From Laetmonice hystrix (Eukaryota): a stretch of 64,000 bases of DNA. A program made the position numbers and the translations under genes. Numbering within the stretch: position 1 is the stretch's first letter; every line of letters begins with the position of its first letter. The notes beneath the pieces were generated by a model that was given only the letters and a program-made list of their open reading frames with translations, was not told the DNA's origin and did no database searches. This document shows, in pieces, positions 25,915-63,254 of this stretch. The DNA lies in assembly GCA_965235115.1 (NCBI GenBank), contig OZ249446.1, positions 15,810,001 to 15,874,000 of the forward strand, written 5' to 3'.

Positions 25915-26456
25915 TTACGTACACAATTCCTCCAATAGGACAGTTAGGGCCCGTTCAATATCAGCGTCAGATTGTATTTGTGTGTACGTCGTTGTCATCG
26001 CCGACGCTCGGTTTATGTTGTTAAGGACGAGTCGGTCGACTTCAGACCCGACGCCCACCGTGTGCACAATGACGTCAGCGAGACCGACGGAAGGTTGTGA
26101 CGTGGCGTGACCGTCACTGATGATGACGGCATGGTTACGGACGCCCGTCCTGTCACCAGCGCTCTCACGGAACACGCGATCACGGAGCGTCCGTAACACC
26201 CGGTCCAAGTCGGTCCCCGAACCTTTACGCGGGAGAGCGATCGCTTCCAAAATTTCCAACTGGCTGGTGTAGTCGTTTAACAAAAACCACGTTTGCACGT
26301 TCCTGTCAAACGAAACCAACGCCACGCGCGTTCCGCCAAACCGGAAACTCAAACCGTTGACGACGCCGCGCAGGAGCATAAGCATGCGCGGGAAGTCCCG
26401 GTCGACATCCACCGAGACATCAACAACGAGGGCTACGTCAATCTGACGGCTGCATC
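25915..26456 (-). CDS. Gene B terminal exon: vWA6 plus stop
   Basis: [16 protein letters not shown]...IISDG...LLEELCT*; acceptor ctaactttag. Confidence 0.9.
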
Positions 26457-29400
26457 CTAAAGTTAGCAAAGTGGAGGCGTTTTTTAAAGAAGTGTATATT
26501 TCACCGCCCTATGTTTCAGTTATTGGCCAGGTGTAGGCCCGTATATCAAGAACGCTTAACCAGACAAATCAACAGCAGTCACCGAGGAGTTTTCAAGTGA
26601 CGGAAGGCCAGCGAAGTTAAGACTTAAATCTAGTCTTATGAAATTATCTTAAAGAACAAAACGTAGTTTTTGAAGACCAGTACTCACTTCGTTCACAGCG
26701 CAGACCGGCGGTGGGATAGGGACAGTCACAGCGCGGGTTTAGGGAATCAGGAATACATCGTCCAGAACCACAATTCAAACGTCTACAGCCGTCCGTGTCT
26801 GAAACATGATAGACAATGGTGTAAATCCTGTCCTCATTAAAACATTAAAACATCCACAAACATCACAACAATACTGACAGTGCATGGATTATCTGAGTGG
26901 ATTCATTCATGGTCATCAAAGATTGGAAGACATACAGCACCTTAAACTCAAAATAGTTTTATTGCCGTTCATTTCTTGGCAAAGGAACTGTAGAGTAAAA
27001 ATCGCGCCTATATTATGGGCCTATTGTGTACTATTGGGTCTGATCCCCTGGGGCGATTTTGGACGTTCATGCGATTTTGACATCACATTTTTATTATACT
27101 ATGATTTTGAGATTAAAGGATGGAACCCATTTCCTTAAACAGGGAAGGCCAGCCAGGAAAATTCCTGAAATTCCACCATTAAATCAAAGATCGCATGGCC
27201 GTCGCAAGGGAAATCGCTTGGGATGAAGCCCTTTAAGAATCAGCAGCCACTAGCCCATTCCAACATGGCCTGGCCTACTCTCACCGTTGATAATTGTATC
27301 GATGAGCCTGTCTGTGATCGACCCCAAGTCACCGACCCGTTTGACGGTGAGTACCGTCCTGGAGTACGGGTAGCTGGCGATGCCGCGGTACTCGAGGGCC
27401 CGGCGCCGGTTGAGGCCGATGCCGACCACAAGGAAGACGGTGCCGTCAATACGAGCCCGGACCGCCTCACGGACCGTACGGTCCAGATCGTCAGGGTTAC
27501 CGTCTGTCACTAACACGGCGTAGTTCACTACGTCAAGCCGGTCTCCGTTAGACCCCGACAGTAACTGTTGCCGCATTAACTTTAAGAGAAACATGTAAAC
27601 AGCTATAGCTAGATGTGATGCAGGTAGAGGCGAGAGGGTTAAAACAAAAAATTGTATAAGATTCTGAACCGTACGAGTTCATAGGTGACACCTACTGTTT
27701 AGTGCAGACTGAAGCAGATGTTAGCGTACAGTTCACTACAGTACAGGATGTAAAAATCCTTGTAACAGGGGGTCAAACAGTCAAGGTAGGGGGTCCCAGT
27801 AAGGAAAATGTATTAAAGGCAAAGTGGCATAAAAAGGGCAGTCCGTACCCCTCGGACGGCCTCCTTAGTCATCCTCCCAGGAGCTGTTGTCCCCCTCCCC
27901 CGATAAGTTTAAAAATAACTACTTTTTTCTAATACCAAAACCCTCTTTTGAACCTTGGTCTGCCCCCTATCAATTTTTGGCTGTGTACGACCCTGGGGGA
28001 GGCGGAGGGGGGGGGGGGGTTGATGTGCAGGCCTACTGTTCGTACCGCGATGGCGGCGGCCGTGTTGGTAGTACCGCCGGTGTACCGGATCGACTCGGTC
28101 GAATGGATGATATCCTGAGGGTCGGAGTACTCGTTTAGGTTGAGACGTACTCGGGCCCGGTCGGAGAAAGTAATCACTGATAGTCGGGTCTGCTCAGGTC
28201 CGATGTTCAGGTTGTGGGTGACGTTAGTGACGAAGTAAAGGAGAAGAGGGAAGTTCTCCCGCTGGATGCTTCCGGAGGAGTCTATGAGAAACACAACGTC
28301 CATCTTCTTACTGCTTCCTGTAGGGGTGAGGACAGGGACGCTCAGTAAGGACATGATGAATAAAGGAAAACAACAACGTAACTAGAGAAGGCAGAAATAC
28401 AAGACGTACGTGTGCAGTGCAATAAAGTAAAGGGCAAGCCGTGAAGATATTACAGGTCATTGAAAAGTACAGGGAAATAATTATGAAATGCGTATAAAAT
28501 ATTTTGGTACCATATAAAAAAGAATATAGACATGAGTCCTGTGATTTTTTGGGTATATTGTTTTCTTTGGTGTATTATTGCGCTATTCCGTATTTTAATA
28601 AAACTTATGAAACCTTTTTGTCTAAATTCTGACCATATTTCTATAATAATTACAGGAAATAACGAAAGACCTATAAGAAAACCGTCTATTCTAGAAGGAT
28701 TATAAGACGTACGTCTGGCACAGGTTGGTCCAAGGTACCCTCGCCGACACCGACATGTATACGACCCGATTCCGTCCATACACACACCACCATTTTCACA
28801 CGGCCTTCTGTCGCACTCATTGACCGCTGCCAAATACACACAGCAAGCCTAATATACTAAAAGTATACCTGGTATAGCCGAGGAAAATCTTTCTACTTCA
28901 TAATAATTAATTATTAAATTAACAAAATAACAAAATGGTTATACATGATATACACGTAGGAGAAATTGAGACATTCTTTAATCTCTTCTGTAATTACGAG
29001 GTGAGAGAATTCTACATTAGAAGTATTCACTATTTTTCAGATTTTAAGTGGAATTTATTACCGTTTTGTATATCTCTAACACATCAGTTCCATAACATAC
29101 TCACGAAACAACCACAGACAGGGGAGGCTATATTTTAAGAATACCCTTTGTCTTTCAGTTGCCAACCTATAGCAGTCAATACGCCACTTCCATGTAAATA
29201 CAAATGACCGCCCAGGCCTGGTTATGGAATCAGAATCAGATCCCATTGCTGGCAGAACTTACCGTTACACAGGTGTTCAGTGAGAGGCTCCAACAGTTGC
29301 GGCAGGTCCTGAAAGCCGTGTATCATGTAGAGGTTGGAGTCACCCAGACCGCTAGCAATCCCACGTAGTTCTAACTTACTGACTACTCCACCTACTCCAA

Positions 29401-32400
29401 TAACTATCAGTGTTACACCTACAACAAACGACAGTCACATCATGAACAATGGTATACATAGTCCTTATTACTAACACGATGTGTTCTAACTTACTGACTA
29501 CTCCACCTACTCTAATAACTATCAGCGTGACACCTACAACAAACGACAGTCACATCATGAATAATGGCATTATATAGTACTTATTACTAACACAATGTGA
29601 CCGCCTTCCCTCGCACAACAACAAGAAAACAATACGAAAAAGAAATTTACTCACGCCTTAGAAGAGAATGTGTTTGTTACAATAAAGTCCTACCAGAATT
29701 CCGAGTTGACACCGCTTGTCGGTAGGTGGCGTCGCGGTCTAGTGACTTGCCGTCCGTTAAGAGTATGGCGACGTTTGGAACATTTGGTCGGTCTCCCCGA
29801 TCTGGGGTAAACATCTCACGTATCGTTCTGACAATAAATAAAAGGGTAATTATATGTATGTAAACTAGTGAGCTCAAATGAAAATTTCCCAGAGTGGCGA
29901 AATTACGGGTGTTAATTTATAGACCCTATAGGCCTATATTAATTTAACACGCCATCTGATTTCGGACTCACGATCGTGGGTTTTCTATATTGATTGTCTA
30001 TAAGTAATGGGGTGAGCTTACGTTATCGCTTCTGCTGTATTAGTTGATCCCTTTGTATAAGGAAAATATATCGCTTCCTGGATCAATCTCTTCGTGGAGT
30101 ATTTGCTGAGGTCAAAGTGAACGGTCACGTGATCATCATAGGTCAGGACCCCGACTCGTGTCCTCCTGGCGGAGTTAGACGGAAACGGGAAATTCTCGAC
30201 GAGATCCGAGAAAAATCTGAGCATCTTATAGAAATTCTTCTCGCCAACTGAACCGGAAGAATCGATGGCGAATACGATATCGTAGTAACCTGGGCAGTCT
30301 GTAACGACAAACCGTCTTAAAGTAAAAGAACTTCTAAAAGAAAGAGACCAGACTATGCAGACATTACGGTATAACATCGGTGTTTACAGTTATGTGTAGA
30401 AGATTTTAGTTTTGTTAATTACAAGAACGTTAACGGAGGTGGACGACACATACCGTATTGACAGTCTGCCCCGGATGTGCCATCCCGGCAGGCACAGCGG
30501 TACTCGTTAGTTCCGTTCGTACAACCACCACGGTTTTTACAGGGATTGTTCATACATTCGTTCGTTTCTGTTCAAAGGAAAAATTCAGATATACACAAAC
30601 ATAAAACTGTTTAAGTGACTTGGCTCTACGTATTTTAAATCTAAAGTATTTATAACACTTTCATCATGCACGACTCAGTTCATACCTTTTAAATTATTTC
30701 TCGTGAGGTTTCAGATTCCCAGTGAGGCCACATTCATAAATGTAGGCCCTACACTGTATTATTGAATTTTTCCTGAAGAGAATGATGTAAACAAATCATC
30801 TAACCATTACAAATGGATGTTTGAATCGCCTGCACGACTTTATCCAACGAGCCGTAATCGCGCACGCGCAGAGCGTTCTTCTCGCGCGGAATGCTCGCAA
30901 TGCCGAGAAGTTCCGTGTCCCGCATCCAGCGCGGATCGCTCACCCCCAACACAAGTGACGTCACACCCGCTTCCTTCAGAAGTCGAGCCTCGGTTAAAGT
31001 TTCCTCCACCTGATTGGATTCGCCGTCTGTGATGACGATGATGACGTCAGGCGCGTCCCGTCGATTTCCGCGGTCGTTACGTAACAGCTCACGTCGGACC
31101 AATCGTAACGCGGCCGCTGTGTCTGTAGTCCCGCGAGAAAACTCCACCTCTAGAATCGCTCTGGCCGCGTCCTCGCTGTCCCTGAAGTCGTTCAGATAAA
31201 ACGCAGCCCGTGGTGTGTCTCCGTAAACCACCAACCCGACTCGTACGATCCCCGTGTTAATCTCAAGGTTGCCGATCAACGTCCGCACAAAGTTTTTCAT
31301 TCGGATGAAATTGTTGTCACCAATACTGCCCGAGGTGTCGAGAACAAATACCAGGTCTAATCTTTTGGCACAGTCTATCCAACGAAAGAGAGATCAGATT
31401 AGGTTAACTGTATGTAGTAAACATTAGCGGCAGGTGTATATAGACGACACGAGTATATTATTAGCAATCTAAAAGATAGGACGCGACAAGGACCATCATA
31501 TAAATGATTCCTTCACGCATCAAAAGGAATCTTAGGTGCTATTCTTCACAGCTCCCCAGACTGTACGGAGAAAGGATAATAGTGTGCCAAGTTCAACTGA
31601 ATAGGAACGCTTCAGTGTCAAGATTCTTTCCGGTGAATTAACCTCAGACATACTGCTTGACTGAAGGTTATTCTCCCTGAAGCAGTATAATTTGGACCGT
31701 TTGCCTTATTGAAATGTTAAAATCCCGCGTAACAGTATTCAGAGTCATTCACTCAATGTTACCTATGCAACTCAATTAATTCGCAAAGAGCTTTCATGAT
31801 ATCACTTATTAAAATCAAGCAAGGCGGACGCTGAAATCCTGGCATGGAGCCAGTCTGTTAATCAAAGCAATTGTAAAGCTGCCAACCCTGGGTTTAAGTA
31901 CCCATCCTCTCTCTGGGCTGCTGTGACGACTCATTTAATAGTTGCCTGTTTGTTCGACTCAATGAAGGCCTGTGAAACAAAGGTTGTTCTGGACCTTCTC
32001 GGAACGGTGCCAGATCGCTGTCGCTTCAACATTATATTGACTTAAATGAAATGTTGAAATGTTTTACACCGATTAAACACCTGCCGCGGAAGAATGTTGT
32101 TATTCTTCTGTAGTAATAGTTCATCCTTGGCTCACAACTTACATACTATATCCAGCTCACAGTCGGACCACTTCAGGACGATGTTGTCGTAAACGCCGTC
32201 AGCCGCTTGAGCAACTCGGAAAACGTGAGCAACATCCGGGTCACTGGCAATAATCTTCAGTTCCCGGATGTCAGCCAAAGGTCCCAGCCCGATTGCGTAC
32301 ATCTGTGTGACACAATCTTGGATAGAAAACTCACGTCTAAATGGAAATGGAGGAACTTCACAAATCGTCAGACCAAGAATTGCTAGAATACGACGGTAGG

Positions 32401-35400
32401 AACACTTTGGTGATACAGCAAGCTGGGCCTATTTTGTTAGTCACTGATGGGAGTGGAATTCCTGGTCGAAAAGTTAGGCCATAGACCTCCTGATGTTACT
32501 TGATAGGGGGCTGTTTAATTCTATTCCTCTGCCTAACCCCTCATGCCGCATAAAAATGGACAACCCAGACCATTCTTGTAGTAAATGAACGCCTACCTGA
32601 ATTCCTGCACGGTGGTTGGCATACGAGTCCCGATGTAGGTTTCCTTCTTCCCTGTTAGCCATTCCGTCTGTTATTAGTATCCCAACGTCTCGGACGCCTT
32701 TCCGGTTTCCATTTCCCGGTAGGAACATCTCGCGTCTGACGAGACGGAGAGCTCCGGATGTGTTGGTGTTCTCATCATGATAAACCACGTGATCGATTTG
32801 ACCTCGAAGCCCTGATCGCGAGAACGTCTCGTTAAACCCGAACTGCGGATAGGCAAAGTTGCTGTAGGCGATACCTGCCACGCGCACGTTATGTTTGCCC
32901 ACCGGAAGTAGTCCCACGAGATGTTTGGCGAAAGTGAGGCTCTTGGTCCACTCCTGTTTGACGCTGCCGGAAGTGTCCATGATAAACACGATGTCGGCGG
33001 CTTCTGTACAGACTAAAATAACGAGGAATTCCAAGTATACTCGAGCGGCAATGGATCAAACAGAGATGGCCTGTAAAGCAGTTGTTTTCAGAATAACTGC
33101 AAGACGCCTCTTAATTTCCACCCAATGTCGGGAACCAGGGCCCGGTTTTTTGGTTGAGCTTGAGACGAAACCTCGTCTCAAGCTCACGGCCCTATAGGAG
33201 TCGACTCATAGGGCCGTGAGCTTGAGACGAGGTTTTCTTCTCAAACTTGACTCAAGCTCAACCAAAAAACCGGGCCCAGGGGTCTAGAAGTCTTGAGCCC
33301 ACATTTAAACATATTTTTTATAATGCATTTTGCTCACTTGGCCTCTGTTGGACCCTATTTTTAGGTGGGCCCCTTTTTGCAAGCTTCCCATGTTGGACCT
33401 CAGCTGCAGGAGTTTTCAAAATCAAGGAGCAGCCCCTACGTCAAAAATTATACTCATAGAAAATAGACTTACGTTTGAAATCTCTGCATATTGTCTTTGT
33501 AATATTGTTCGTAAGTGTTTGTAACTGTTCCGGTCGGTCGACGAAGAAGAAATGATCCTCGTCTGGGTTGGTGGCGATCGCCCTTAACTCCACCCGGTCA
33601 ATTCCATGACTCCCAACTCCGACGGTAAACAGCCGAACTCCTTGTCGTCGGAGTCGGCTGGCTATCCGAAACACCTGCACATTCCCAAACAGGTCAATTA
33701 AATTCATCTGAACTCTTACTTTGTTCAAAATGATGGAGTTAATGTTTGTTAATCTCCTTGTGTTTATAATGTTTTACGGGTTAGCTCCAAAACTACACAC
33801 TGACAATGGCATACAGTAATACTTCAGGTATGGCCCCTAGAGACCTCATTAGACTTAAACGTTCTCCCTTTTCACCTGATACCAAACAGATCCCTTGGAA
33901 AGTCTCCCGAAATGATTGGTCAGGACCGAGAACCCAAGTGAAGGGAGCAGTGTCCGTTAATACCTGTTCCCGGTTGACGTCCGGCCGGCTAGCCGTTACC
34001 AGGAGAGCGGCATTGGGTGCCAGGCTCCGGTCTCCTTTGGCCGGTTTGAAGAGAACCCTCTCCAGGTACTCGAGGGCGGCTGTCAGATTGGTTGGACTCC
34101 TGCCTGGGTACTGAACGCGCCCCAATGCTCGGGCCACCTGTCAGAACATATACACAGACTCCACATCTACTACATTAAGTGCCCCCTTTTGGATACCTTT
34201 TTGAAGTGAATACCTTTTAAAGGTTTCCCCGGCTTGTAACCCCTTTCCCGCCACCTTTTTGAAATCCTGTATCCGCCCTAAGAGGTAGCCCCACCTCATT
34301 TATCTTATCTTTAATGTCTCAATAGTCAGGAAATTTTCAGACAGCATCGTCAACCCATTGGTTTCTGCACATGAGCTCAACTTCACTCTGATTGAAAACT
34401 CGGCAAAAGGTGTGCTTCATTTGATATTCTGCTCGCTTCCCGCGTTATGATCAAATATGTGTAACCTAAACGGGTGCGTAACCTTACGGAGCCCACTTTA
34501 GATGCCACAGGTAGAGTCGATAATATATGGTAAATCCGACGGGAAGTATGGGATTCGCAGATATATCCTTTAAATCAATGTACACGACCAAAAGAAATAC
34601 GTGGACTGTACCTCCCCAGGAGATAGCCATCTGTTAAAGGAGAACGCCTCACGAACACGGTCACTATACACGATGGCTGCGACACGAGCGAGACCGTCAT
34701 CAAGCGTGAGCATGCGCGTGATTGATTGAACCAATCGGATCATCTCGTTCCAGGTCCGACGCCCCACCTGGCGGGAACCATCCAAAACAACCACCAAGTC
34801 GCCTTTTTGTTGACATACTGTCAAGCGAAACAGAATAAGCAGATTAAGTTAACAGGTCTACTATTGTACTACTAGACAACTAACCTTTTCTATAACAACG
34901 TTTACAGAAAGATGTGGGATTTAGAGGAAGGGGTATCAAAAGAAACACTCAGACCAAAATATGACCGAACTAAACTGTCTAAAGTATATTGTGTATCAGG
35001 AACAGTAAATTTAGCCACAAAGGTTTACACCTTAGATTATGGTACGCCTAATGTCGAAGTTCACGGTATTAGGAACAGTAACTATTTAGCCACAAAGGTT
35101 TACACATTAGATTTTCGTATACGCCTAATGTCGAAGTTCACGGTATTAGGAACAGTACCTATTTAGCCACAAAGGTTTACACATTAGATTATGGTACGCC
35201 TAATGTCGAAGTTCACGGTCCTATCGATTAGAGAAACAGAAATAGAGTAAAACTGTGGATGATACCGTAATTACTACAGATAGCATCACAGTCAATTGGT
35301 AATTATTAGTGTTCAGGGAAACACTACAAGGGCAGTCATAAATCATCATTGACGACGGCACCACACATGGCGATCCAAACCTGGTTTTTATTAAGGGACT

Positions 35401-36911
35401 GTCCTTTAACGTACAGTGCGTTTTAAAAACATTACGGGGCCCCCTCGTTACCGTGATTGTAAGACACGAATTTGCTTTTAGTTCTGCTTCAAAAATCTTT
35501 GAAGGCTGCCTCGGTGTATGGCCCGATAGAAATCGCACTTTGACATATTCGGAGGCGAAGGATAAGAAAAACAACACTCATTATTAAAGTTTGTCACGTT
35601 TGTCCCAGTACAGGCTAAGAGTTCTAAAGAGAGAGAAAAAACCGCTAGATCTCCTCCAATAAAACATAATGCAAAACATGCCATAAGTGGTTCCATGTAT
35701 ATGTATTTCAATACTGGTGATCTGTGCATGTATATAATATATGCTACTTTGGCTTGAAAAGTATTTTCCACTCCTTCAAGTAACAGCATATAACACACCA
35801 CAATTCTGCTGAGTGTTTCAAAGAAGAGAATGGAAACTTCTTTCTGCGGATACAAACAGACGTATATGTTATGAGTTTAGATATTTTTGTCGAAGATTTT
35901 GTGTGCGTGATGGAATGGAAGAAGAGCAGATAAAAGAGTGCAGTGTGGTCATTATGTCTGACCGCGCCATGTGTGGACATTAATAATGCCTGTAACGCCA
36001 CAGACGATTCATTGACATGCACTCTTGGAGTAAATAATCAAACGTCTTCCCCTGTGCCGTCAGTGGCATGATCAGCACAAATAGAACGTGTTCCTTTATC
36101 CAACGGATATTCCTTCCTCGGGAAAAAATAAATGAAAAAATAAGTCGTTCTTTGCAAGGTGGTAATCGTTCAATTCAACACAGGGCAGGGGCCGTGCAGG
36201 AGGCGAATAGTTGTACTGTTTGCTTCTTTCTTTGCATTTTTTACCTCCTGACCTTAGAGAGACTTGCCGTTGGTTTGCCGAGTTCGGGAGACATTTCAGC
36301 AACATATTCTGGTATATTACTGTAAGGATCAAATGAATCCTTGAAGGAGTGTGTTCCTATGGTGGCATGCACTCTGCTCATGTCGATGAGGAATGTATAG
36401 GGGGGGGGGGGGGGTCAATGTCTAAAGGTTCCCATAATATGGCGGCCTGATATGGCACATGCTTCGACGAGATTTTGATTTCTTTCTTTCTCCGATACAA
36501 AGGAGTCAAACTGTACTTATATAATTTAACCATACTGGTAGCAAAAATGTGGTACGCGTTTTTGTACTAATTCCCTTAAGTTTTAATGACTAATCAAAAC
36601 TGGCAATGTTAATTATACAACCCCCATATTTTTAAAAATTTCTTTCTTCTGAAACTACAGTAATCGCCGCCTATTCACTATCACTAAAACAGAAGATGAC
36701 GCTGGGAAGAGGACAGGAAAATGACTGGGCATTATTAGGTCAAGACTACAAGTAGTATTGTTGTGCTAATGTGGTAGTAATTATGTGATGTGCCAATTAG
36801 AGATGACGTTTATAAATACAATATGAGTGTCTTACCCCTCTCGGAGGCGGTACTAATTGAATTCCAAACTAACAGAAACATCCACAGTAGAAACGTTTTA
36901 TGGCGCGCCAT
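25915..36911 (-). CDS. Gene B: secreted vWA/EGF multidomain protein (SP-vWA-vWA-vWA-EGF-vWA-EGF-vWA-EGF-vWA), 16 coding exons, 1272 aa
   Basis: Exons 36836-36911, 34612-34817, 33964-34137, 33473-33674, 32597-33012, 32143-32302, 30805-31374, 30454-30567, 30022-30298, 29694-29827, 29263-29418, 28713-28826, 28046-28317, 27285-27579, 26688-26798, 25915-26456. All are AG/GT-bounded and phase-compatible, summing to 3819 nt in one open frame. Confidence 0.85.
26688..26798 (-). CDS. Gene B EGF3 exon
   Basis: [36 protein letters not shown]; six Cys, phase 1-1, 111 nt. Confidence 0.85.
27285..27579 (-). CDS. Gene B vWA5, second half
   Basis: [27 protein letters not shown]...LIDTIIN; donor g|gtgag. 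Confidence 0.88.
28046..28317 (-). CDS. Gene B vWA5, first half
   Basis: [16 protein letters not shown]...[11 protein letters not shown]; phase 1-0. Confidence 0.88.
28713..28826 (-). CDS. Gene B EGF2 exon
   Basis: [37 protein letters not shown]; 114 nt. Confidence 0.92.
29263..29418 (-). CDS. Gene B vWA4, third part
   Basis: [23 protein letters not shown]...EHLCN; acceptor ttgtag, donor gtaagt. Confidence 0.88.
29368..29598. repeat. 2 x 115 bp tandem duplication copying an exon acceptor and the first ~51 coding nt
   Basis: 29368-29482 vs 29483-29598. Confidence 0.9.
29694..29827 (-). CDS. Gene B vWA4, second part
   Basis: [28 protein letters not shown]...RNS; phase 2-1. Confidence 0.88.
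30022..30298 (-). CDS. Gene B vWA4, first part
   Basis: [16 protein letters not shown]...GSTNTAEAI; donor gtaagc. Confidence 0.9.
30454..30567 (-). CDS. Gene B EGF1 exon
   Basis: [37 protein letters not shown]; 114 nt. Confidence 0.9.
30805..31374 (-). CDS. Gene B vWA3 (single exon)
   Basis: [16 protein letters not shown]...VITDG...TSICN; 570 nt, phase 1-1. Confidence 0.92.
32143..32302 (-). CDS. Gene B vWA2, second part
   Basis: [23 protein letters not shown]...WSDCELDIV; donor gtaagt, with an alternative in-phase donor at 32164. Confidence 0.8.
32597..33012 (-). CDS. Gene B vWA2, first part
   Basis: [16 protein letters not shown]...LITDG...RAGIQ. Confidence 0.9.
33139..33276. mobile_element. 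138-bp MITE, PIF/Harbinger-like, flanked by CAG direct repeats
   Basis: cag|ggcccggttttttggttgagcttgag...ctcaagctcaaccaaaaaaccgggcc|cag, plus an internal hairpin ctcgtctcaagctcacggccctat/atagggccgtgagcttgagacgag. Confidence 0.8.
33473..33674 (-). CDS. Gene B vWA1, third part
   Basis: [21 protein letters not shown]...KTICRDFK; donor gtaagt. Confidence 0.88.
33964..34137 (-). CDS. Gene B vWA1, second part
   Basis: [22 protein letters not shown]...[13 protein letters not shown]; phase 0-0. Confidence 0.85.
34612..34817 (-). CDS. Gene B vWA1, first part
   Basis: [16 protein letters not shown]...FNRWLSPGE. Confidence 0.85.
34998..35219. repeat. 3 x ~75 bp tandem repeat (intronic)
   Basis: ggaacagta...tttagccacaaaggtttacac...cgcctaatgtcgaagttcacggt three times. 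Confidence 0.9.
36836..36911 (-). CDS. Gene B first coding exon: signal peptide
   Basis: [25 protein letters not shown] has a basic n-region, hydrophobic core and S-T-A cleavage site. The phase-1 donor g|gtaaga matches the vWA1 acceptor. It is too short to appear in the ORF track. Confidence 0.7.
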
Positions 36912-51121: not shown

Positions 51122-51491
51122 TCACGTACAAAGTTCGTTCAAAAGCACGTCAGCAATGACATCCGTCTCCTCTCTTGACCTCGCTCTGTACATGTGGGTG
51201 CTTTCGGGTGCCGAGGCAATTCGAGCCAGTTGTTCTCTGTCTATCGAGTCTCCCAGACCGATTACGTATATTCTCAACCGACCTCTGGCTCTTCGCAGGT
51301 CGTCAACGACCTGGTCGATGAAGTCCTTCTCCATGGTTGCCTTGCCATCGCTTAACAACACTAGCACGTTGTCAACGCCGTTACGGTCGCCACTGCGAGG
51401 GTTAAAGACGTTGTCACGGATTTGTCGCAAGGCTGCAGCAATGTTTGTCTGGTAGCCGACTTCGCTGACGGTGATGGCGTTCAGGATGTCA
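51122..51491 (-). CDS. Gene A terminal exon: vWA6 second half plus stop
   Basis: [23 protein letters not shown]...LLSDG...LLNELCT*. Confidence 0.9.
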
Positions 51492-54400
51492 CTAAAATGT
51501 AAATACAGTGTATAATACTTTTATCAAAAATATATAATTTCATATAAATTTGCCAAGCGCATGGGAGTAGAAAGTGGGCTATACATGTAATTCTAATTTA
51601 CGTTGTATACCACACCCTTCTTGTCCACCCGCGTCTCCCCGAAAAAATCATCAATAGATCTACGTATGTCATTAGTCACAGGAAAACGATATGTGTACAT
51701 GTGTATACGTAATTTAGGGTACATATAAGATCATGCATACCTTATCTGTGATATATTGGCTAATAACCCGATGGCCGTATAAGATGTTTAAGTATTTTTC
51801 AGTATTTTCTGCATATTTTCGGGTTTAACCTTCCTTTAAGACTCACCGGTCAGTAGAATAAGTGTCCAGGAAGAATTTTGTGTCTGGATTCTCCGCATAG
51901 GTTGTAAGGGAAATCCTTGTCCGGGAAAACTTGAAATTAAGGCCAGAAACGACACGCTTGATGAACGACACAGGAATATCAAACGTTCCTTCGAGGGAAC
52001 CGGATATATCGACCAGGAACGCGACGTCTGTCTGCGTTGCGCATCCTAGAAGGGAAAAAATGAGTAATTATAAGATTTCACGCCCAAAATATCTGCAGGT
52101 CCCTAGTTTAGATTTCGACATATTGCCTTATGCTGCCTTTGATCACTTTTCCAGAGCAAACCAAACAGGAGCCGTTGTGACCTGGGTGATATGAGCAAGG
52201 GTCAGCTATGAGCTGAGGACTTTTTACAAGAGTCTGGATAAAAAATCATGTTGTTTCACCTTATTTTATAAGCCTAGTTATTGTAACGTTATAGGGCATT
52301 TTCTTCGGTAAGGTATTCTTAATTTCGATTGGGTCTGGGGATTGAAATCTGGGACCCAACGTTACGAAAAACTGTAAACAGCTAGGGACCTCATCGATTA
52401 TGGACCTCAACTCCGATTACTGGCAAGAAAAGTGATCCGTGGTCATAAGTAGCCTTACTAATATTTTATTTTCCATAACTAAATATGAGAACGGGATGGG
52501 TAGGGTCGCCTATTTTGCAGTCACACCATGGGCCTGGTCCCCTGGGAATGAACAACCTAAACGTACGTCGTTCGCAGTTGACTCCTGTGTAGCGATCATC
52601 ACAGCGACATAAGTAAGACTTGAGGCCGTCAATACACGTTCCGCCGTTCAGGCACGGAGAACTTTCACACTCGTTTATACCTTAAAGAGGGAGAGGCAAA
52701 CAAAAGAGATGTGTACAGGTTACAGGGTAATGAAGAGTATTATACTTGTGTGGCGTGTATATCTCGACAAATGCGTTCTTGATAGGCCTGGACCTAAAAT
52801 TTCTTCATAGAAATTATATAAATGCGTTTATTTTAGAAATAAAAACCTTACTGTTGCACACTGCCCCTGCCACGTTCGGCACCACAGTCTCCAAATTCTT
52901 GAAGTCCTCAACGTTGAAGATATTTTCTGCGAAAGGTTCGCTAGCGATGCCATGAAGATTCAGGTAGTTCCGCCCCGAATTCAGCCCTGAGCCAATGGTT
53001 ACCAAGACAACATGGATCCCTTCTATCTTCGCATTGATCGCTTCCGGTATCATGCTCTCCCGCTCGGCGTTCGGCAGGCCATCCGTGACAACGATGGCGT
53101 AGTTTGCGACATCAGGCCTGTCGCCGCCCGTGCTAGTAAAGAGATTATTTCGCGCCAGGCTGATTCCTCTAGCGGTGTTCGTCTTGCCACCCACGTACGA
53201 CTCGCCCAGTTTGTCGAGGGCGAAAAGCACATCTTCTCTCTCGGAGCGGGCCCTGAACGGATGTCGAACCTCAGCGTTCTCATTGAATGAGATGATGGAC
53301 ACATGGATCTGATCGTTCTCCAGGTCAAGCTGACGTACGAGCGACTTCACGAAGTCGATCACGTAACCGTAATTCTCTTTCTGGATCGACCCGCTTGAGT
53401 CGATCAGGAAAGCTATGTCCGCCCTGTTCGTACAGACTGCAGAGAAATATATATTCAGTCAGACAAACGCGCAAACGTCTTTTCATTCAACCTAACAGGC
53501 TATAAGTCTCATGTTCTAGCGGGTGAACCTCCTGAGGAATACACTACGACCTTCTCAACATTGTTCTCCTGTAGTTTTAATCTCTCTCGGAATCACTCAC
53601 ATCTTTCACAGTGACGCCCGGTGAATCCTGCCCGACACCGACACGTGTAGTCATTGAGACCGTCAATGCACACGCCACCATTCAGACACGGCCCTCCTTC
53701 ACACTCATCAACGACTGGTGCAGACAATAACAAAATGATTTCAATACATTTCTTACCGTATACTTCTTCATTGAGGGTTTTAGCCTTTCATGGAACCATA
53801 AGATTCGCCTACGTTCATATCACATTCAACAGCAATTGCTCTTCGTCTTCTTGTTTGTTTGTAAATGCTACTTTAGTTTTCTTGATTTTGGGGTAAATAT
53901 TTAGGCCTTGATAACGTTTAATAGAATAATTCTCAATCCCCACTTGGACTAGTCGGGCCTCTGTTTCTAGTAATGCTTGACCCTGACTGGTGACCTGTAG
54001 ATAAGATACTCACTGTTACACGACTCGCGGATGAGAGGAGTGAGCACTCCAGCTAGTGCGTTGAAGTCTCGTACTTTGTACACGTTCTGGTTGTCAGGGT
54101 CGCTCGCAATTCCGTTCAGTTCTTTCTGCCCGACACTTTGGCCAACTCCGATAGCAACAAGATGAATTCCCGCTTTTCGGGTGGCAACCGCCTCGGCTAA
54201 CGTGTCGTCCCGGATGTTCGACTTGCCATCGGTTAGAATGATTCCAATATTGACGGCATTGGGACGGTCGCCATTACCACGCGTGAAGACTTGATTGCGC
54301 ATGAGCCGTAGCGCTTCCGCCGTGTTTGTGGTGCCCCCTGTGTAGCGGAAGTTCATGGCGTTCAGCACAGATTTCGTCGTGTTGTAGGCGTTCAGACCGA

Positions 54401-57400
54401 AACGGACGGTTGCATCGGTCGAATACAGGATAATGCTTACCCTGGTCCCACCCTCAATGTTCAAACCGTATATCAAGTCACGGACAAAGTCTTGCATGAT
54501 GAAGAAATTGGGTTTCTCTATACTTCCGGAGGCGTCCATGGCAATGGCGACGTCAGCAATATTAGGACACCCTGTAACGTACAAAACAGGTATTAAACTA
54601 CAATATGGACAAACAAGACTAGTTTTATCAGTACTTGGAGAATATAGATGGTTCATTTTTATATTGTATCAAGTATCATCACAATATGTTAAATACTGAG
54701 GTGTTGTCTTACGCTGGTCACAGTCCTTGCCCGTGAAGCCCGTGGGACAGCGACAGTAGTACATATTGATGGCGTCCTTACATACGCCTCCATTCTGACA
54801 CGGTGAGCTTCGACATTCGTTCTCCACTAGAAAGGGCACAGAGAGCAGGTCAATGGAGGAGAAACTGGTTGAATTTCTAACTGAAGCGACAAGTGGTCAG
54901 TACAATAGTGACAGAGCTGGAGTTTGTGCCGACATATTTTCTCTTGGGGATGTTAAGCCACTGATCTCCAGAGGATCCTTAAACTAGTTCGTGGTCCTGA
55001 AATTCTAAAGCACATCTTACGATTGCACATCGCGAGGACCAATAGATCCAATGCCTGGAACAACGAGTTGTAGTCGAGTACGTTGAAGACGTTGCGAGAC
55101 TTGGGATGACTTGCCATTCCTTCTAACTCGGACTGACGCACCCACTTGCCCACACCAAGGGCAAGAACCGTTACCCCGTTGTCTCGTAGCAGTCTGGCCT
55201 CGTCAATGCTTTCGTCGGGGTTGGTGGACTCTCCGTCCGTGATTATAAATAGAACATCAGGGATGTCCAGTCTGTTTCCGTTAGCCTCGGAGAAAATAAC
55301 TTGGCGGGCAAACCGCAAGGCCTGCCCCGTGTTCGTTCTCCCATGGGTGTATCTGCCAAATAAAAGCTAGACTGCTAATGGTTCCTGGGTTACTTTCTGG
55401 AATTTTACACGAGTTGCAAAGAATATTTTGGTAGCATATAGGGGGTTAAGGACATTATATATTATCAACACAAATTTTTAAGATAGCAATAATCGAATCG
55501 GGAGGGAACAGCGATAATTTTAATTTTGATTTTGATTTTACCTGGTCTTTCTAATTTTGCTCAGCAGTTCAGTCTAATTGAATACTATATTAAGGTTGGT
55601 CATTACGCCACTCACTCGACTCGTTGTATAGCGCCAGTGACCTGAGAAGCTGTCGTGTATTGGTCGAGGAAGAACTCAACCTTTGGGGTATCCGCGAACG
55701 TCATGAGTGACACCCGCGCTCGGTTGTTCCTGAAGTCTAGCCGGGCCGCCAGTTCTCGGACAAAGTTTAATACCCTCTGGAAATCAGGCTCTTCGATGGA
55801 GCCAGAGGAGTCCAAGACAAAGGCAATGTCCACTTGGTCAGTGCAGACTGGAAAAATAAAACAAAGAATGTTGTGAGCGAGACTTTGATAGATGGCGACT
55901 TTGCAACTCTTCCTTGCACAGATTCCACATTTAAAATCAGGGGCGTGCCGGATCCGCATAATTTGACATCACAGTCTGAAGCAACACGACACCTGAGAGG
56001 CCGTGCCGAAAACCTTCACAAATCAAATGACGTCATGTATACGTCAGGAGGTGCTCACCAGGTGGCGCCTCACGGCAGGTCCTCCTGACGAGCGTCGATT
56101 CGATTTCCCGGAGGTTGTTAAAGTCGGTCACGTGGAAGACGTGCTCGCTGTCTGGGTTTGTGCCAATCTCACGCATCTCATTCTCCAGGCGCGGTCGCGT
56201 CAGCACGTCGTCACCAATTCCAATGGCGAACACCCGGATACCATTTTCGTGGAGATTGTTCGCTTCAATCGTAGTGAGTTGAGGCTACAAATAGTTACCA
56301 GTAAGTACGACCAGGCTGAGGGCGGGGGGTTGGGTGGGGTCGGAGGGGTGTGCGCCTCCCTCAGCGGACGGAGGAGTACTTGTCCGTGCAAAAATACAAC
56401 CCTATGCAGAAACCCTTTTCTCTTGTCAGTTTGCAGGTAAGAGCAAATCCTCCGTCAGTAGAAGCCCTGGCTGTAAGTTTACTTTCTCCCCCAAAAGGTC
56501 CAATTTTCCTAAAATATTAACAATTTCCACTTCTTCAAAAAGGTCCACTTTCCCCCCAAAACGACTAGTTCATTTGGAAATCCTGGAATGCCAAGTTATG
56601 TGGAGCTGTATTGACATAGAAATCCTTACGTTTGAAAACGAGAATTAGTAGGTCTACTGTGTTGTGGGTGAGATGCATAATGGTGACTGAGCTACTAAAA
56701 CCTCTTACAGTTAATGAGTTAATTTTATGTTACTCCCTTCTGATCTTTGTCTCCTTCCGTAGTTCTATTCCGATTTCGATTTCAAAGAATAAAATTCCTT
56801 TTCAGAATATGGCGTTAATAGCACGCAAATGCTACTGAGCAGATTGCATTTTTTAAACCCAATATCGCGCCGATATCACAAGGCAAATCGGAACAATGAA
56901 AAGGGTTTTTACGTGTCCCTATCGGACTTTCTAATTGCAATGTACACAAGTGACAACTACGGACCTGGATAGTCGACGCCCCGTCGCTAACCACCACTGC
57001 GATATCGCGAACGTTTAGTCGGTCTCCACGTCTCTGTTCATATACATCGCGACTGAGCGTGCGCAATGCTCCGGATGTATTAGTGGCGCCCTCTAGAAAT
57101 CCAAGTTTCGAGATGGCGTCAGTCATCTCGCCTTTACTTCGGTATCTGTGCAAAACGAAAGGGAGAACCGTTATTCTTGTCGGGGTGGAATGTAATCATT
57201 TTTAGCGATTAGCATATGACTTTCTGTTTCCAATATGGACGGAGGCCGGTTAGGCAATATTTCTATTACAATTGTCGCCCGTAGGTATTACCACATAAGA
57301 TATTGGATATGGTGGCAAGATCGTAATGGTTTGCCATATTGATAGAATATCAAGGTGTTCACTTCTCTAACTTCTCAGAAGCTTGTGACACAGCGTTTAT

Positions 57401-60400
57401 GAATAACTTAACGTCAAGGTTTGACAAGTTCTTTTTGTGCCCACCCTATAAATCCCAATCCTCACGTATATGCCATACAGGCCCATCTTATTCTGTCCTT
57501 ATTATAATAGTACCTTTTCAGATTTCCTGTTCTTCTATAAACCATAGCAATCCTAAAAAGTTTTAATGAAAAGTTACAACTTAACTTCCCTTCGCGTGAG
57601 GCCCTCTGAGCCTTCAAATAATATTTACCTCCACTGATCATGAAAGGCGTTAATGACATGCTTACAGGGGTTTAATTGCCAACCCTGTTACACTGATCAT
57701 GTAAAATACATGCATGTTGCATTCCACGTATGGTAACAAGTTTTAACATACCTATACGTAATTAAGACATGGCACATTCCTAGGAAGCCGTGCGAGGTCT
57801 AAGGTGCAAGCTGTTTTAGGCTAAGGCCTAAATTGTCTCAGCTCTAGCCATCATATTCACTCGCAGTCGCATTTTATTGTCAAGCGCATGAAACACAGGT
57901 TTGCGCAAGGGACGAAATGGTACGTTAGAGTCATAAACAATACGCATACAAAGGAATAGTAATCACCCTTTACAAGAGCAGATCCCAGAGATTAAGACAT
58001 GAGTTATAACATATACTATGGTACCCGTGCGACTGGCTGAAAATTCCGCCGAGATATATGCTTTATGTGGCGTACATCTCTTAAAGAGGAAGGCCTATAC
58101 TTTCACGGTATTTTAGAACCAGTTCCAGGAGGGACGATAAACATCAACAAGTATTCCGAGTTCACCAATACAATAGGAAGCCTTCACCAAGGAGGAACCA
58201 TGCCGATACCCAGGGCCGTAACCCGACTCAATGCACTGGACGAAAACAATCACGCCACCTGGTGGCATGAACCAACATCACAAAACAATCGACGCCAATT
58301 GAATGTTGCCTTCCAGGGTGACTGTAAGAGGAGGTGGGGAGGAGGTTGAGAAAAAGGCATGACAGATCAGGAGAGCATTCTCTTCCCAGAAGGAATGCGT
58401 AATAAGTTTTCTTTTCAGTTTCAGGATGATTGTATAGGTGAGCGAACCCGTGAGAAATGGATACCACTGTTGTAGTTTACACTTAGAAACACAGGGATGT
58501 ATGTGTACCGCCGTTCCGTAAAAGTTTATCCCTATTTAATCGGTTAACCTAGATAGTGCTTCTTTTATAAGAACCTCTAAAGTCCATTTAAATTTACTGA
58601 GACGAGAATTGGTCTTGCACAGAGAAAATGCATTGTCAAGGTAGCCATCAATGAGCAGAAGCTATAGGGCGGCATCGAAGTAGAGTTTGACAACGGCAAC
58701 CCCTTGGCCTATAGCAGTGGTGAAAGCCCAGTAGCTACAGGTTTGCAGCATTTCCAAATCGAAAAAAATGAGCATATTCTTTCTTTCTCGTTATGGTTTT
58801 TATGTTTCTCTCTTTTTCTCATAGTATGGGCTTCTAGAAAGGCAATGACATGTGGTTACAATGGAACACGTACAATGGAAGGGGTGTTTATCTGTGTATA
58901 TATATGTGCGTCGTACTGTGATAATATATATACATAAAAAGCGGAAATGTTTCTGAGCCGTGTTCCACACACACAAGGGCTTAGCAACATAACGGACACA
59001 CAGGTAGATGCATTGTAGGTACACTAAAATGATGCAAAGATACTTACAATAACGGGTCAGGTGAGAGGTACCTTAATTAGATAGCACACCAGCACGTCAC
59101 TCTTACACGCAGCTTTTTAATGATTAAATTAATTAATGTATTAATTGTGTCATGTGGGGCGTCATGCCCGTGACTTGTGTATTGTGAATTTGAGCTCTAT
59201 TGTGGCATTGCTTTAATATTCATGTCCCTATACTGCAGCAGATTATCTTCATAATCTGTTCTATTTATATTATAATTCGTTCATTTAAAAAAAAAAAGTT
59301 TCAGTAACACATAAAGTGGGACATTATTACAGAAAATATGTGGACTAAGAACAACCTCTATTATCCAATCCATGTATTGGGGCCTCTGGCGCATTCTTCT
59401 TCTTTTTCTTCCTCCTCTTCTTTTCCTTCATCTTTTTTCCATCCATTTTTCATTCTAGGTATAGAGTCGCCTTTACTGAACGAATACTTACCTGTCTCAG
59501 CAAAGTCGGGTGTAGGAGGCACATAAAATCCGACTAGAATCTTTTGGCACACTATCGCATCCATTCCAGGGTAGTGGGATTTTTTCGTCCATTTCTTTAT
59601 TATATACAGCAGTCATTACTCTATTCAATGCATATTATATCCACTGGCGACTTTTCAGGGCAACTAAATCTCTATCTGCGTTATGTAGGGTAGAAACGGT
59701 CTCAAACTGGTTATAATAGACAGTGACATCTCTATACAGTCTAATGGTTAGAGCAGCCAGCTCCTTTCTAGCCATGTGGCCCTGACGTCATTCATGGTTT
59801 TAGGGTTAAAAAACATATTTGACAAGAAAAGAACTTTGTTCCTGCAATGTACCCTTGAATATTGTAACGATACTTTCATTTTTTTACTGACGGTTTTCTA
59901 GGTATCATAAAACCTGATAAAAATTACGAAATTATATAGTCCCTAAAGATGCGTAACCCTGCCAAATTTGATAGTGCCATCGTCCACGTAACAAGAGAAC
60001 AAATGGCACTGGTCCGCCCGACCGGCTTATTTTCGTATGGTTGATGGAAGTGAACGAAAATAAAGAATGCACGATGATGCATGTTTGATTAAATGTGGAC
60101 ATTAATAAGACATCTTATGAATCATGGTTTTGTTGAATTTCTTCCGGCCGGTCGCCAGACCAGTGGGCCAAGGCTTTTACGAAGGGTGCAGGCCAAGTAA
60201 AATGCACCACAACAGAATCTGATGTACGAGCAGGCGTGTCCTATGAAAACTTAAAATCACGCATTAAAAAGGTGATTCTGTGAAGTAAATATCAGTCGTT
60301 GCTCCAGAAAGACTGGCATTTTACAAATTAGTAAAAGGTTAGAGATACATGGCTCCCAACGCTATTGTTTTCTCTGAAATTGTATCCATGAATACAATAC

Positions 60401-63254
60401 ACATACATGCAGGCACCCACGCATAAATTCCATGTATTCGCACCCCTATGCAACAGGTTGAATTTGAAATGTCAACGTGAGCATTTGTCAACTAGGTCAA
60501 AAACGTGTCAACTGTGTCAAACCTAGAGTCCTACATTAGAATCTGAAAGAAATAGCATGAATTTCAGTATAGATGCATGGCTCAAAACGCTATTGTTTCC
60601 TCTGAAATTGTATCCATGAATACAATACACATACATGCATGCACCCACGCATAAATTCCATGTATTCGCACCCCTATGCAACAGGTTGAATTTGAAATGT
60701 CAACGTGAGCATTTGTCAACTAGGTCAAAAACGTGTCAACTGTGTCAAACCTAGAGTCCTACATTAGAATCTGAAAGAAATAGCATGAATTTCAGTATAG
60801 ACGCACCTGTCGAAGTAGAAACTAACGGTGGCGTTATCACTGTAGGTTACCACCGCTATACGGACGCCATCCCACGAAATGTACATTTCGTTTATGATGC
60901 GCACGCAGAAGTCGAGCATGACTCGCCAGTTTTTGAGCCCAACGGAACCGGAAGAGTCCAGGATGAAGGAAATGTCGGCTTGTCCCGCGCATGCTGGTTA
61001 TCACAGAAAGTATGCTTACATAACGTAAAATTATCAGATACTTTTCAGTAATGCATTGCATGGCCTTAAGCAAATCAGCACTTATATATCATATAGGTTG
61101 ACTGTGGGGCAAGGTTATGATGGTAACTGCATCTGGATTAAGGTCACTTACATAGACGTCATCAGGGTGGGTGATACCAAAGAAATTTCCTGGAGACACA
61201 TGAGGACCTGACTGCCAAAGGTTCCGCTAAAGTAGGCTATTCATTGCAGACCTACTAGTACACAGTCAAAACTTTGCCGCTACCGAACTGCGAGTTGAAA
61301 GACTTGTTACTTACCTGGGATTCCTCGACACAGCCCCTTCAGGATGTCGTTCCGGAAGCTGAAAAGCCCGGTGGCGTCCTCGACTATCGTGATGTACTCA
61401 TCGACAGGATCGGAGGCCAGTTGACGGAGAAACCCGAACAGTCGGAATCCTTCCACGTTAGTTCCATACGAGGCCACGTAGATCTCTGTCTCCTTGTTCT
61501 TCAGGTTCTGGGCAGCCTCCTGAATATTGCCACCTACCGTGAAGACGCTGGCGGAAGTGATGACGAAGAGAACCTTCGGGAAGCGAGGTCGGGATCCGCC
61601 AGCAGTGTTAAACATGACCCGGTCGACGAACTCGAGAACGCGGGGCAGGGCGGCCTGCGTACCTTGGTACCGGATATTCTCCATCGCCAACATCAATTGG
61701 GATTTGTCGAAAAAATTCGACAACAAAATGTCGGCGGTGCCGTCACCGGCAATCGAGGCGACGCCGACCCGCGTCTTGTTCATAGCGATGTCCAGGCTGC
61801 TGACCAAATCACGTGCAAAGATTTTGGAACGCTGGAAACTGTCCTCTGTGGTGTAAATCGAGTTGTCCAGCAAGAAGACCACATCAGCCTCTCCTTCACA
61901 TCCTGAAGACAGCAAGGAAACGGGATGTATTGCCAATATGAAAATGATTATCTTGGCTATTCCGTTTCAATACTCTAAAATTATAGGCCGAAAATTGCGA
62001 GTTGGGTTTACCCAAAAATCTAAGTAGTGCCCTGCCGAGGGCATCTACAATCAACATCAACTGGTCATTAGTTTAAGTAGCCCTTCCGTGATGTAGAGAT
62101 TTATGTTAATTTAACAACTATGAAAAACTGAGAAACAATAGGCCTATAGGCCTATCATTTTGTCTTTGATCCAGAGTAGGTGAGGTAGTGGATTGGAGGT
62201 TTTACGCCCTGTCGACAGTATTTCAGTCATATTGAGGGCGATAGAAGCCAAGGGAACTATTTTACCCCCGGATTCCGGGGGATTTTTTAATCCAGAGACA
62301 AATCATGAGCAATGTGATCCTGCAGTTGAAGGTAGGTTAGTGGTCATCGACAAAGTAATCAAATCTCTATATGTTGCGATAAGTGTATTGCACACACGAT
62401 AATGTTAGTATGGTCAGAGCATCAGGAATCTTCAAGCCTCAAGTTGTCTAAACCAAATTCTTATTTGAGTAACGCAAATGAGTGTAATTAAATCCGAGTT
62501 AGATCAATGGGTGGAAAATCATGCCAGATCGTTTCTTGATAAAACCAGGAAATAACAATGCAGTAATATATTTCTTGAAAAAAGTGATTGCTATAACTAG
62601 GAGTATTTAGTGTGCAAAATTTAGGCGAAAAGAGTTATAGTTCAATGAACCCACCAAGGCGAAAGGTTCATAGACTAAGAGGAAAATTGTTATAGTCTAT
62701 ATCAATCACAGTATACAGTAGAAATATAAAGCAGAAGAATAGTATATTAAAAACACAAGACAACAGCACATCTTTAAGCTAAGACTATCACTGTCTACCT
62801 AGAATGATTAAGTAATATCACTTCAGTCATATCATGCCGGTACAAACTGTTCATTGTAACGTAAGCTTCACTATTCTTGTATATTCATGCTTCATTCCTT
62901 CTGTTTCCTCACCAAAATATTCATCCTCATTTTCTCCGTTGCCTCTAGGTGTCTGTGTTGTAGAACGAGAGAATTCTCGAGTGGATATGAGAGAAGACAG
63001 ACGGCTAGACGACGTGCTAAGGTTGTCGTTTGAAGGTAAAGAGGATAGATTCCTGGTCTGAGAAGAGGTAGAAATGTTAGCAGATAGAGTGAGAGGTCTG
63101 TCAACGGAATTATCTCCTCCCGGAGTCCCAACAGGAGTCAAGGTTATGCTTGTTGTCTGTGAGTTAATAGCGGTGACGTTAGTGGGTGTCCTAGCGGCAG
63201 AGTCGGGAACTAGATCCGTCACAAACTGGTCCGTTTTGACAGCTTCCGACGTAA
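51122..63254 (-). CDS. Gene A (5'-incomplete): Ser/Thr-rich stalk + vWA-vWA-vWA-EGF-vWA-EGF-vWA-EGF-vWA; paralogue of gene B
   Basis: Exons 62913-63254, 61315-61902, 60807-60993, 56965-57145, 56059-56284, 55616-55847, 55021-55352, 54713-54826, 54014-54571, 53601-53714, 52852-53436, 52567-52680, 51847-52045, 51122-51491. All are AG/GT-bounded and phase-compatible (4142 nt), ending LLNELCT*. Confidence 0.87.
51847..52045 (-). CDS. Gene A vWA6, first half
   Basis: [16 protein letters not shown]...FFLDTYSTD; donor gtgagt. Confidence 0.9.
52567..52680 (-). CDS. Gene A EGF3 exon
   Basis: [37 protein letters not shown]; 114 nt. Confidence 0.92.
52852..53436 (-). CDS. Gene A vWA5 (single exon)
   Basis: [16 protein letters not shown]...VVTDG...GAVCN; 585 nt. 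Confidence 0.92.
53601..53714 (-). CDS. Gene A EGF2 exon
   Basis: [37 protein letters not shown]; 114 nt. Confidence 0.92.
54014..54571 (-). CDS. Gene A vWA4 (single exon)
   Basis: [16 protein letters not shown]...ILTDG...RESCN; 558 nt. Confidence 0.92.
54713..54826 (-). CDS. Gene A EGF1 exon
   Basis: [37 protein letters not shown]; 114 nt. Confidence 0.92.
55021..55352 (-). CDS. Gene A vWA3, second half
   Basis: [14 protein letters not shown]...IITDG...LAMCN. Confidence 0.9.
55616..55847 (-). CDS. Gene A vWA3, first half
   Basis: [16 protein letters not shown]...GAIQRV; donor gtgagt. Confidence 0.9.
56059..56284 (-). CDS. Gene A vWA2, third part
   Basis: [24 protein letters not shown]...RRTCREAPP. 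Confidence 0.88.
56965..57145 (-). CDS. Gene A vWA2, second part
   Basis: [27 protein letters not shown]...[10 protein letters not shown]. Confidence 0.88.
60348..60803. repeat. 2 x 228 bp near-perfect intronic tandem duplication abutting a splice donor
   Basis: 60348-60575 vs 60576-60803. Confidence 0.92.
60807..60993 (-). CDS. Gene A vWA2, first part
   Basis: [18 protein letters not shown]...SFYFDR. Confidence 0.9.
61315..61902 (-). CDS. Gene A vWA1 (single exon, degenerate MIDAS)
   Basis: [16 protein letters not shown]...VITSAS...GLCRGIP; 588 nt. Confidence 0.9.
62913..63254 (-). CDS. Gene A Ser/Thr-rich (mucin-like) stalk exon
   Basis: 342-nt phase 1-1 exon (cctag|...ttt g|gtgagg) encoding TSEAVKT...STSSSRLSS...EDEYF. 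Confidence 0.7.

Follow-up and report, generated by a model that had tools for sequence, protein, structure and literature searches.

Gene models of a tandem vWA/EGF pair

The window analysed here is a 64,000-nucleotide stretch of Laetmonice hystrix DNA (G000:C12:15810001-15874000) that contains no N; the next 20 kb beyond its end were also examined. It carries two neighbouring genes, which we call A and B, whose predicted products are built from vWA and EGF domains. Pfam was run on exon-sized stop-to-stop open frames and placed vWA and EGF signatures from 25.9 to 62 kb. The two genes are on the minus strand and share one domain order: a signal peptide, three vWA domains and then three EGF-vWA pairs. 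A EGF3 lacks a Pfam match of its own, as do two short exon tails of vWA domains in A; the tails complete their domains. Own-domain hidden Markov models (HMMs) applied to the spliced models gave V-V-V-E-V-E-V-E-V (V, vWA; E, EGF) for A and B alike, with 0 residues after the last vWA domain. The initial annotation had read this architecture in both genes, with a stop right after a terminal cysteine, and our models agree on both points: the proteins end 1 residue past the last cysteine, A with LLEELCT and B with LLNELCT. They are 34.5-35.7% identical, consistent with its description of the pair as deeply diverged. The last nine bases of the two genes are identical except in the stop codon (TGT ACG TAA at 25915-25923 in A, TGT ACG TGA at 51122-51130 in B).

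For junctions within a domain, each frame-compatible GT/AG join was scored by a vWA HMM (five single-exon domains) together with a simple splice-site score. Junctions between domains were picked by site score, from the closing cysteine of one domain to the opening cysteine of the next. Every intron in the spliced models is GT-AG and the joined frames are open. The inter-domain introns of A and B are all in phase 1 (16/16), the classic mark of shuffled modules. No intra-domain intron is shared between A and B in both position and phase, and the positions in B also differ from those in its Paralvinella orthologue (see below). This suggests a high intron turnover, with rapid gain and loss, in the whole family and nothing particular to the A/B pair.

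Gene B begins ~600 bp past the window end. Its predicted first exon, with the ATG and signal peptide, is located at window-equivalent positions 64588-64672 (G000:C12:15874588-15874672). It encodes MALTCTCLRLLMTAVTITLATAQNQIPA followed by a phase-1 donor, joins the next exon as G-CEGEAD and resembles the start of the closest orthologue, P0151 (...SWAQNIEQGCDGEAD). No fitting candidate with a methionine, a signal peptide and a phase-1 donor was found between 61967 and 64000 for a start inside the window. The in-window part of the spliced model, from vWA1 to the stop, encodes 1265 residues. The vWA1 domain is a single exon matched by Pfam (61315-61902, in an open frame at 61310-61966), with DNSIY in place of a metal ion-dependent adhesion site (MIDAS). 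Pfam matches and HMM-scored joins support the three exons of vWA2 (60807-60993, also by site score; 56965-57145; 56059-56284) and the two of vWA3 (55616-55847, also by site score; 55021-55352). The last 11 residues of the third vWA2 exon are identical in the Paralvinella and P0151 orthologues. EGF1 follows at 54713-54826 (Pfam EGF, 1.4e-9). The vWA4 domain is a single exon (54014-54571; Pfam VWA, 7.4e-39) with best matches in the PDB to collagen VI alpha3 and mussel PTMP1. EGF2 (53601-53714), the single-exon vWA5 (52852-53436) and EGF3 (52567-52680) were all recognised by Pfam. The vWA6 domain is split between 51847-52045 and 51122-51491, again with Pfam matches and an HMM-scored join. In the spliced model the second of these exons ends in LLNELCT and the TGA stop codon (51122-51124), and ATTAAA occurs at +404 and +647 nt downstream.

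Within the first intron of B there is an S/T-rich open reading frame (ORF) of 145 residues at 62854-63288 on the minus strand. It has no Pfam match and is not needed by the model, and is probably not coding. The initial annotation had placed the pair between 25915 and 63254. The first of these positions is exactly the end of the A stop codon; the second falls in this intronic ORF and is no gene boundary.

Gene A is located ~14 kb downstream of B on the same strand. It has 16 exons and encodes a predicted precursor of 1272 residues including the signal peptide, 1247 of them from vWA1 to the stop. Exon 1 (36836-36911) contains the ATG at 36911, a signal peptide of 25 residues and a phase-1 donor, and joins in frame from ~2 kb upstream. 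It is the single candidate upstream of vWA1 that combines a methionine, a hydrophobic segment and a phase-1 donor, besides one match inside the 3' region of B. Three exons form vWA1 (34612-34817, 33964-34137 and 33473-33674), all with Pfam matches and HMM-scored joins and the first and last also with site scores; DGSRQ replaces the MIDAS. The first exon of vWA2 (32597-33012), which carries the MIDAS sequence DTSGS, is supported by Pfam, the HMM-scored join and the site score, and the second (32143-32302) has no Pfam match alone and completes the domain in the HMM-scored join. The single-exon vWA3 (30805-31374; Pfam VWA, 8.7e-42) is matched at 81% identity by an orthologous exon of a related species, P0225. 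EGF1 (30454-30567) was assigned from its six-cysteine pattern; its EGF_2 score of 19.2 bits is under the 22.1 cut-off. The three exons of vWA4 are at 30022-30298 (Pfam, HMM-scored join and site score), 29694-29827 (Pfam and HMM-scored join) and 29263-29418 (HMM-scored join and site score). EGF2 (28713-28826) is of the calcium-binding type and matches EGF_CA, hEGF and EGF in Pfam. The two vWA5 exons (28046-28317 and 27285-27579) have Pfam matches and an HMM-scored join. EGF3 (26688-26798) is degenerate: it has no Pfam match and is one residue shorter, and it keeps the six cysteines and is matched by the own-domain EGF HMM. The single-exon vWA6 (25915-26456), found by Pfam, has an imperfect MIDAS (DVSVD) and ends in LLEELCT and the TAA stop codon at 25915-25917 in the spliced model.

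The 14 kb between the genes contain short ORFs only, and none has a Pfam match. The two genes are adjacent and on the same strand with no other Pfam-recognisable gene between them, as would be expected if they were one gene with a transcript running through both and encoding 12 vWA domains. The ends of the gene models make this extremely unlikely. The TGA of B comes directly after the vWA6 cysteine, where full-length orthologues end, including the uninterrupted P0151, and the B stop is followed by the ATTAAA signals. A has its own methionine, signal peptide and phase-1 donor. A and B are separate same-strand paralogous genes, as the initial annotation had proposed, each with its own predicted signal peptide and a stop after vWA6.

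Cysteines, metal sites and EGF modules

An alignment of the twelve vWA domains of A and B revealed a cysteine at the start of the domain and a C-x at its end. A census of the cysteines in both proteins gave two per vWA domain and six per EGF domain, with two exceptions. In A vWA5 (27285-28317) both the N- and C-terminal cysteines are lost while the full MIDAS is kept. Such a joint loss fits a disulfide partnership between the two residues. B vWA2 has one extra internal cysteine, the sole one without a partner by the census. In matrilins, the two terminal cysteines of the vWA domain are near each other and are most likely joined in an intradomain disulfide, which stabilises the fold (PMC4294422). 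The LLxELCT ending, which the initial annotation had singled out as a shared C-terminus, is best read as the last helix and closing cysteine of vWA6. This is ordinary vWA chemistry and not a separate or assembly motif, judging from the census and the matrilin precedent (PMC4294422). The disulfide assignment has the same basis, as the PDB alignment of A vWA6 stopped short of the terminal cysteine. The terminal cysteine would pair with the N-terminal cysteine of vWA6, so that no free thiol is left for cross-linking.

The complete MIDAS pattern (DxSxS...T...D) is present in the alignment in V2-V5 of A and V2-V6 of B, from which metal and ligand binding are predicted. It is absent from V1 of both proteins and imperfect in A V6, where the MIDAS serine is lost. 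The calcium-binding EGF pattern (D/N-x-D/N-E/Q-C; C-x-D/N-x4-F/Y-x-C) was found in E1-E3 of B and in E2 of A, and is not present in A E3. Only A E2 scores above the Pfam cut-off for EGF_CA (29.8 vs 27). C-x-S-x-P-C is the consensus for O-glucosylation and C-x4-T-C that for O-fucosylation. The former occurs in B EGF1 (CRSSPC) and B EGF3 (CESSPC) and the latter in B EGF3 (CLNGGTC); the A EGF domains contain neither.

An annelid family and the age of the pair

Relatives were collected with B vWA4 in a full HMMER scan and with the Helobdella protein in a word-based search. These gave 229 proteins, 211 of which (P0001-P0211) were scored for architecture with the own-domain HMMs. The V-V-V-E-V-E-V-E-V order with a tail of 0 residues was found in Helobdella robusta XP_009025465 (P0035, ‘hypothetical protein HELRODRAFT_189175’) and in Paralvinella palmiformis LSH36_47g02029 (P0152). 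It also occurs in P0151 and P0099 (tail 0) and in P0047 (tail 1). These three are uninterrupted ORFs on contigs of 4-6 kb, which we infer to be transcripts; P0151 has 1280 residues on 6.1 kb. A shorter form with five vWA domains, V-V-E-V-E-V-E-V, is encoded by Capitella teleta CAPTEDRAFT_225901, Dimorphilus gyrociliatus DgyrCDS8533, P0015 and P0019. Two genes of the 5-vWA type are also present on the chromosome of A and B, ~10 Mb away at 26.18 and 26.22 Mb. The first (L006; G000:C12:26182501-26191500) reads V-V-E-V-E-V-E-V and ends in IIDQLCR, and the second (L007; G000:C12:26223001-26232000) reads ...V-E-V-E-V-E-V and ends in AERLCQW, each followed by the stop. Further matches to this 5-vWA-type cluster lie at 26.34 and 26.39 Mb of the same chromosome (C12). 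In Owenia there are variants with the order MAM-vWA4/5-EGF-vWA-EGF-vWA.

The ending of A and B, LL[DE]xLC plus 0-2 residues, is common to all relatives with their architecture and extends to the two genes at 26.18 and 26.22 Mb. The Pfam lists of the relatives contain vWA-type and EGF-type families only, with neither a collagen helix nor a matrilin coiled coil. The named relatives are annotated as ‘hypothetical’, and automatic annotation often calls such proteins ‘collagen alpha-x(VI)-like’. A literature search on the accessions of the orthologues found nothing, and one on annelid or polychaete vWA/EGF proteins found general mentions of vWA domains only. A and B are members of a multi-gene annelid matrix-protein family that is uncharacterised rather than undiscovered. 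The initial annotation had put forward a distinct, undescribed family. Distinct and uncharacterised it is; the architecture itself is annelid-wide and already in databases as hypothetical proteins.

Over its full length, B shares 47-48% identity with P0152 and P0151, and it is 35% identical to the Helobdella protein. The best match of A among the scored relatives is B, at 34.5%. In a tree of 18 full-length relatives, B falls within the 6-vWA clade (starred support of 100), and A is sister to the whole clade (Shimodaira-Hasegawa-like approximate likelihood ratio test, SH-aLRT, 84) on a long branch. The approximately unbiased (AU) test rejects A and B as sisters (log-likelihood difference 58, p 6.7e-5). 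The tree thus places B as the orthologue of the 6-vWA proteins of other annelids and leaves A with no orthologue among the named annelid relatives. The position of A outside the 6-vWA clade and the AU rejection suggest that the duplication is older than the split of these annelid lineages. In a related species (ENA ERZ26222911), an exon 81% identical to A vWA3 and one 63% identical to B vWA1 are on one contig of 562,559 bp. The pair is therefore kept in that species, and A is no decaying copy peculiar to this genome.

To examine the relationships of the individual domains, a tree was built from 51 vWA domains of nine proteins. At each of the positions V4, V5 and V6, the A, B-type and 5-vWA-type domains fall into a single starred clade (support 95-99), and V3 forms one clade with a support of 75. 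A V2 is placed with the initial vWA domain of the 5-vWA proteins (starred support of 96) and not with the B-type V2. The B-type V1 clade (starred support of 99) excludes A V1, which is an orphan on a long branch. It had been expected that each domain of A would pair with the domain of the same number in B; this is true of V3-V6 and partly of V2, and fails for V1. By these trees, the C-terminal four-fifths of A and B are collinear homologues, and the N-terminal domain may be an independent gain or replacement. The family has at least three old subfamilies, represented by A, B and the 5-vWA form.

A predicted matrix linker

The closest parallels to A and B among known systems are proteins of the vertebrate and molluscan matrix. 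Like matrilins, A and B are predicted to be secreted and non-collagenous and combine EGF domains with vWA domains that carry an N- and C-terminal cysteine pair, and matrilins are presumed adaptors between matrix fibrils. Matrilins differ from A and B in their one or two vWA domains, their central run of EGF domains and their C-terminal coiled coil, which forms trimers or tetramers. A and B have six vWA domains, single EGF domains alternating with vWA, and nothing past the last vWA. The matrilin coiled coil (Matrilin_ccoil, PF10393) was present on a matrilin-2 match only and is absent from the Pfam lists of the family orthologues. Collagen VI alpha3-alpha6 chains share the long tandem vWA arrays, and the best PDB match of B vWA4 is collagen VI alpha3 (9han_C). 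However, the triple helix and C-terminal Kunitz/FN3 domains belong to collagen VI only and the EGF domains to A and B only. No run of at least 6 G-x-x triplets occurs in any open frame of at least 30 residues in the six frames of the window, and the collagen helix (PF01391) is absent from P0035, P0151 and P0152.

AMACO (VWA2) is a secreted, non-collagenous mixture of vWA and EGF-like domains with no coiled coil. Its order is vWA-EGF-like-vWA-vWA-EGF-EGF, and it differs from A and B in this order and in having three vWA domains instead of six. No AMACO sequence was among the best matches examined. These differences agree with the view of the initial annotation that the pair is neither matrilin, collagen VI nor AMACO. 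Mytilus PTMP1 is, like A and B, an invertebrate secreted tandem-vWA protein; it binds collagen and ranks second among the solved relatives (4cn8_A, 8.4e-36). It differs in having just two vWA domains and lacking EGF domains, and is specific to the mollusc byssus. The hypothetical proteins of Helobdella, Paralvinella, Capitella and Dimorphilus are the nearest in kind, with the 6- or 5-vWA form, an end at the closing cysteine and 35-47% identity to B. They are predicted only, and A branches outside their 6-vWA clade.

The best explanation of these data, to which we assign a probability of roughly 0.7, is that A and B are two separate same-strand paralogues, each encoding a secreted non-collagenous matrix glycoprotein of a multi-gene annelid family. 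Each protein would be a monomeric, multivalent matrix linker, a single chain arranged as beads on a string and resembling a matrilin that lacks the coiled coil. The vWA domains with a MIDAS (four in A, V2-V5; five in B, V2-V6) probably bind matrix ligands, for example collagens, through a divalent cation, in a mode modelled on the vWA domains of matrilins, collagen VI and mussel PTMP1. The EGF modules, mostly of the calcium-binding type, may act as stiff spacers, and the terminal cysteine would close the vWA6 disulfide. Because no oligomerisation module is present, multivalency is ascribed to the tandem domains.

Several points weigh against this reading or parts of it. The ligand, tissue and function of A and B are deduced wholly from domain content. 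The splice sites, both first exons and the expression of the genes are predictions. A search for RNA evidence found only three sequencing runs, all from one study; 70-78% of the words sampled from a 10-kb stretch that is mostly intron are present in each of them, which indicates that they are genomic DNA. The branch of A is long (1.58 changes per column), so its apparent age could partly reflect fast evolution, a weakness that the AU test shares. The lost MIDAS serine in V6, the lost cysteine pair in V5 and the degenerate EGF3 could likewise be signs of fast evolution. The separation of A V1 from the B-type V1 may mean that the N-terminal domains are not strict counterparts.

The same features of A, together with its orphan V1 and a composition that departs from the rest of the alignment, could be taken as marks of a decaying duplicate, either a pseudogene or a gene under relaxed constraint. 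We regard this as quite improbable in view of the intact gene model: 16/16 exons are open, their splice sites are GT-AG and their phases agree, and the signal peptide and the full MIDAS of V2-V5 are preserved. The related species also keeps the 81% identical A vWA3 exon as an open frame, along with flanking vWA exons, and the joint loss of both V5 cysteines has the look of a tolerated change.

The initial annotation had further suggested that A and B co-assemble as a hetero-oligomer, with the shared C-terminal cysteine as the intermolecular link. The tandem arrangement kept in the related species and the common end motif of the two proteins fit this idea. We nevertheless find it very unlikely. 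The terminal cysteine is the normal partner of the first vWA6 cysteine, and none is unpaired except the extra one in B vWA2. The ending is common to all members of the family, among them single-copy orthologues and the 5-vWA genes at a distance of 10 Mb, and the proteins contain neither a coiled coil nor another oligomerisation module. In addition, no A-like gene was seen in the 10 kb downstream of the B orthologue in Paralvinella or Helobdella, a flank shorter than the 14-kb gap here.

A more serious alternative, to which we give perhaps a third of the weight of the matrix-linker reading, concerns where the same molecules are used. A and B may be parts of a specialised secreted material, such as tube, cuticle, chaetae, mucus or adhesive, and not of the general interstitial matrix. 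Proteins rich in vWA domains are enriched in a tubeworm tube proteome (PMC8476170) and recur in the biomineral matrices of lophotrochozoans (PMC13425148). Outside the vertebrates, the closest relative with a solved structure is PTMP1 of the mussel byssus, and this genome contains large vWA expansions. However, neither of the two papers lists the 6-vWA/3-EGF architecture. Family members are also known from the leech Helobdella and the small interstitial worm Dimorphilus. To our knowledge, neither animal builds tubes.

The protein make-up of the annelid extracellular matrix is poorly characterised, and we know of no description of matrilins in annelids. Our analysis defines a conserved family, with clean gene models for two members, a fixed architecture and a phase-1 domain-shuffling structure. 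The family is a concrete candidate for a matrilin-like adaptor in annelids. Its biology is of specialist interest, as the parts and the likely function are conventional. More speculatively, and with little probability attached, the annelid 6- and 5-vWA/EGF proteins might be a lineage-specific analogue of matrilins or of the collagen VI arm, forming a filament network through vWA-vWA and vWA-collagen contacts with no oligomerisation domain. The syntenic A, retained since an ancient duplication and with its different V1 and altered V5 and V6, would then be a specialised heterotypic partner or capping subunit of B.

Outside the locus, dense tandem vWA arrays were observed at 6.92-6.95 Mb of C12 (>30 units, with open frames up to 1274 residues), at 6.00-6.49 Mb of C20 and at 18.67-18.69 Mb of C2. 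They suggest that the genome contains giant poly-vWA genes and has undergone a large vWA expansion.

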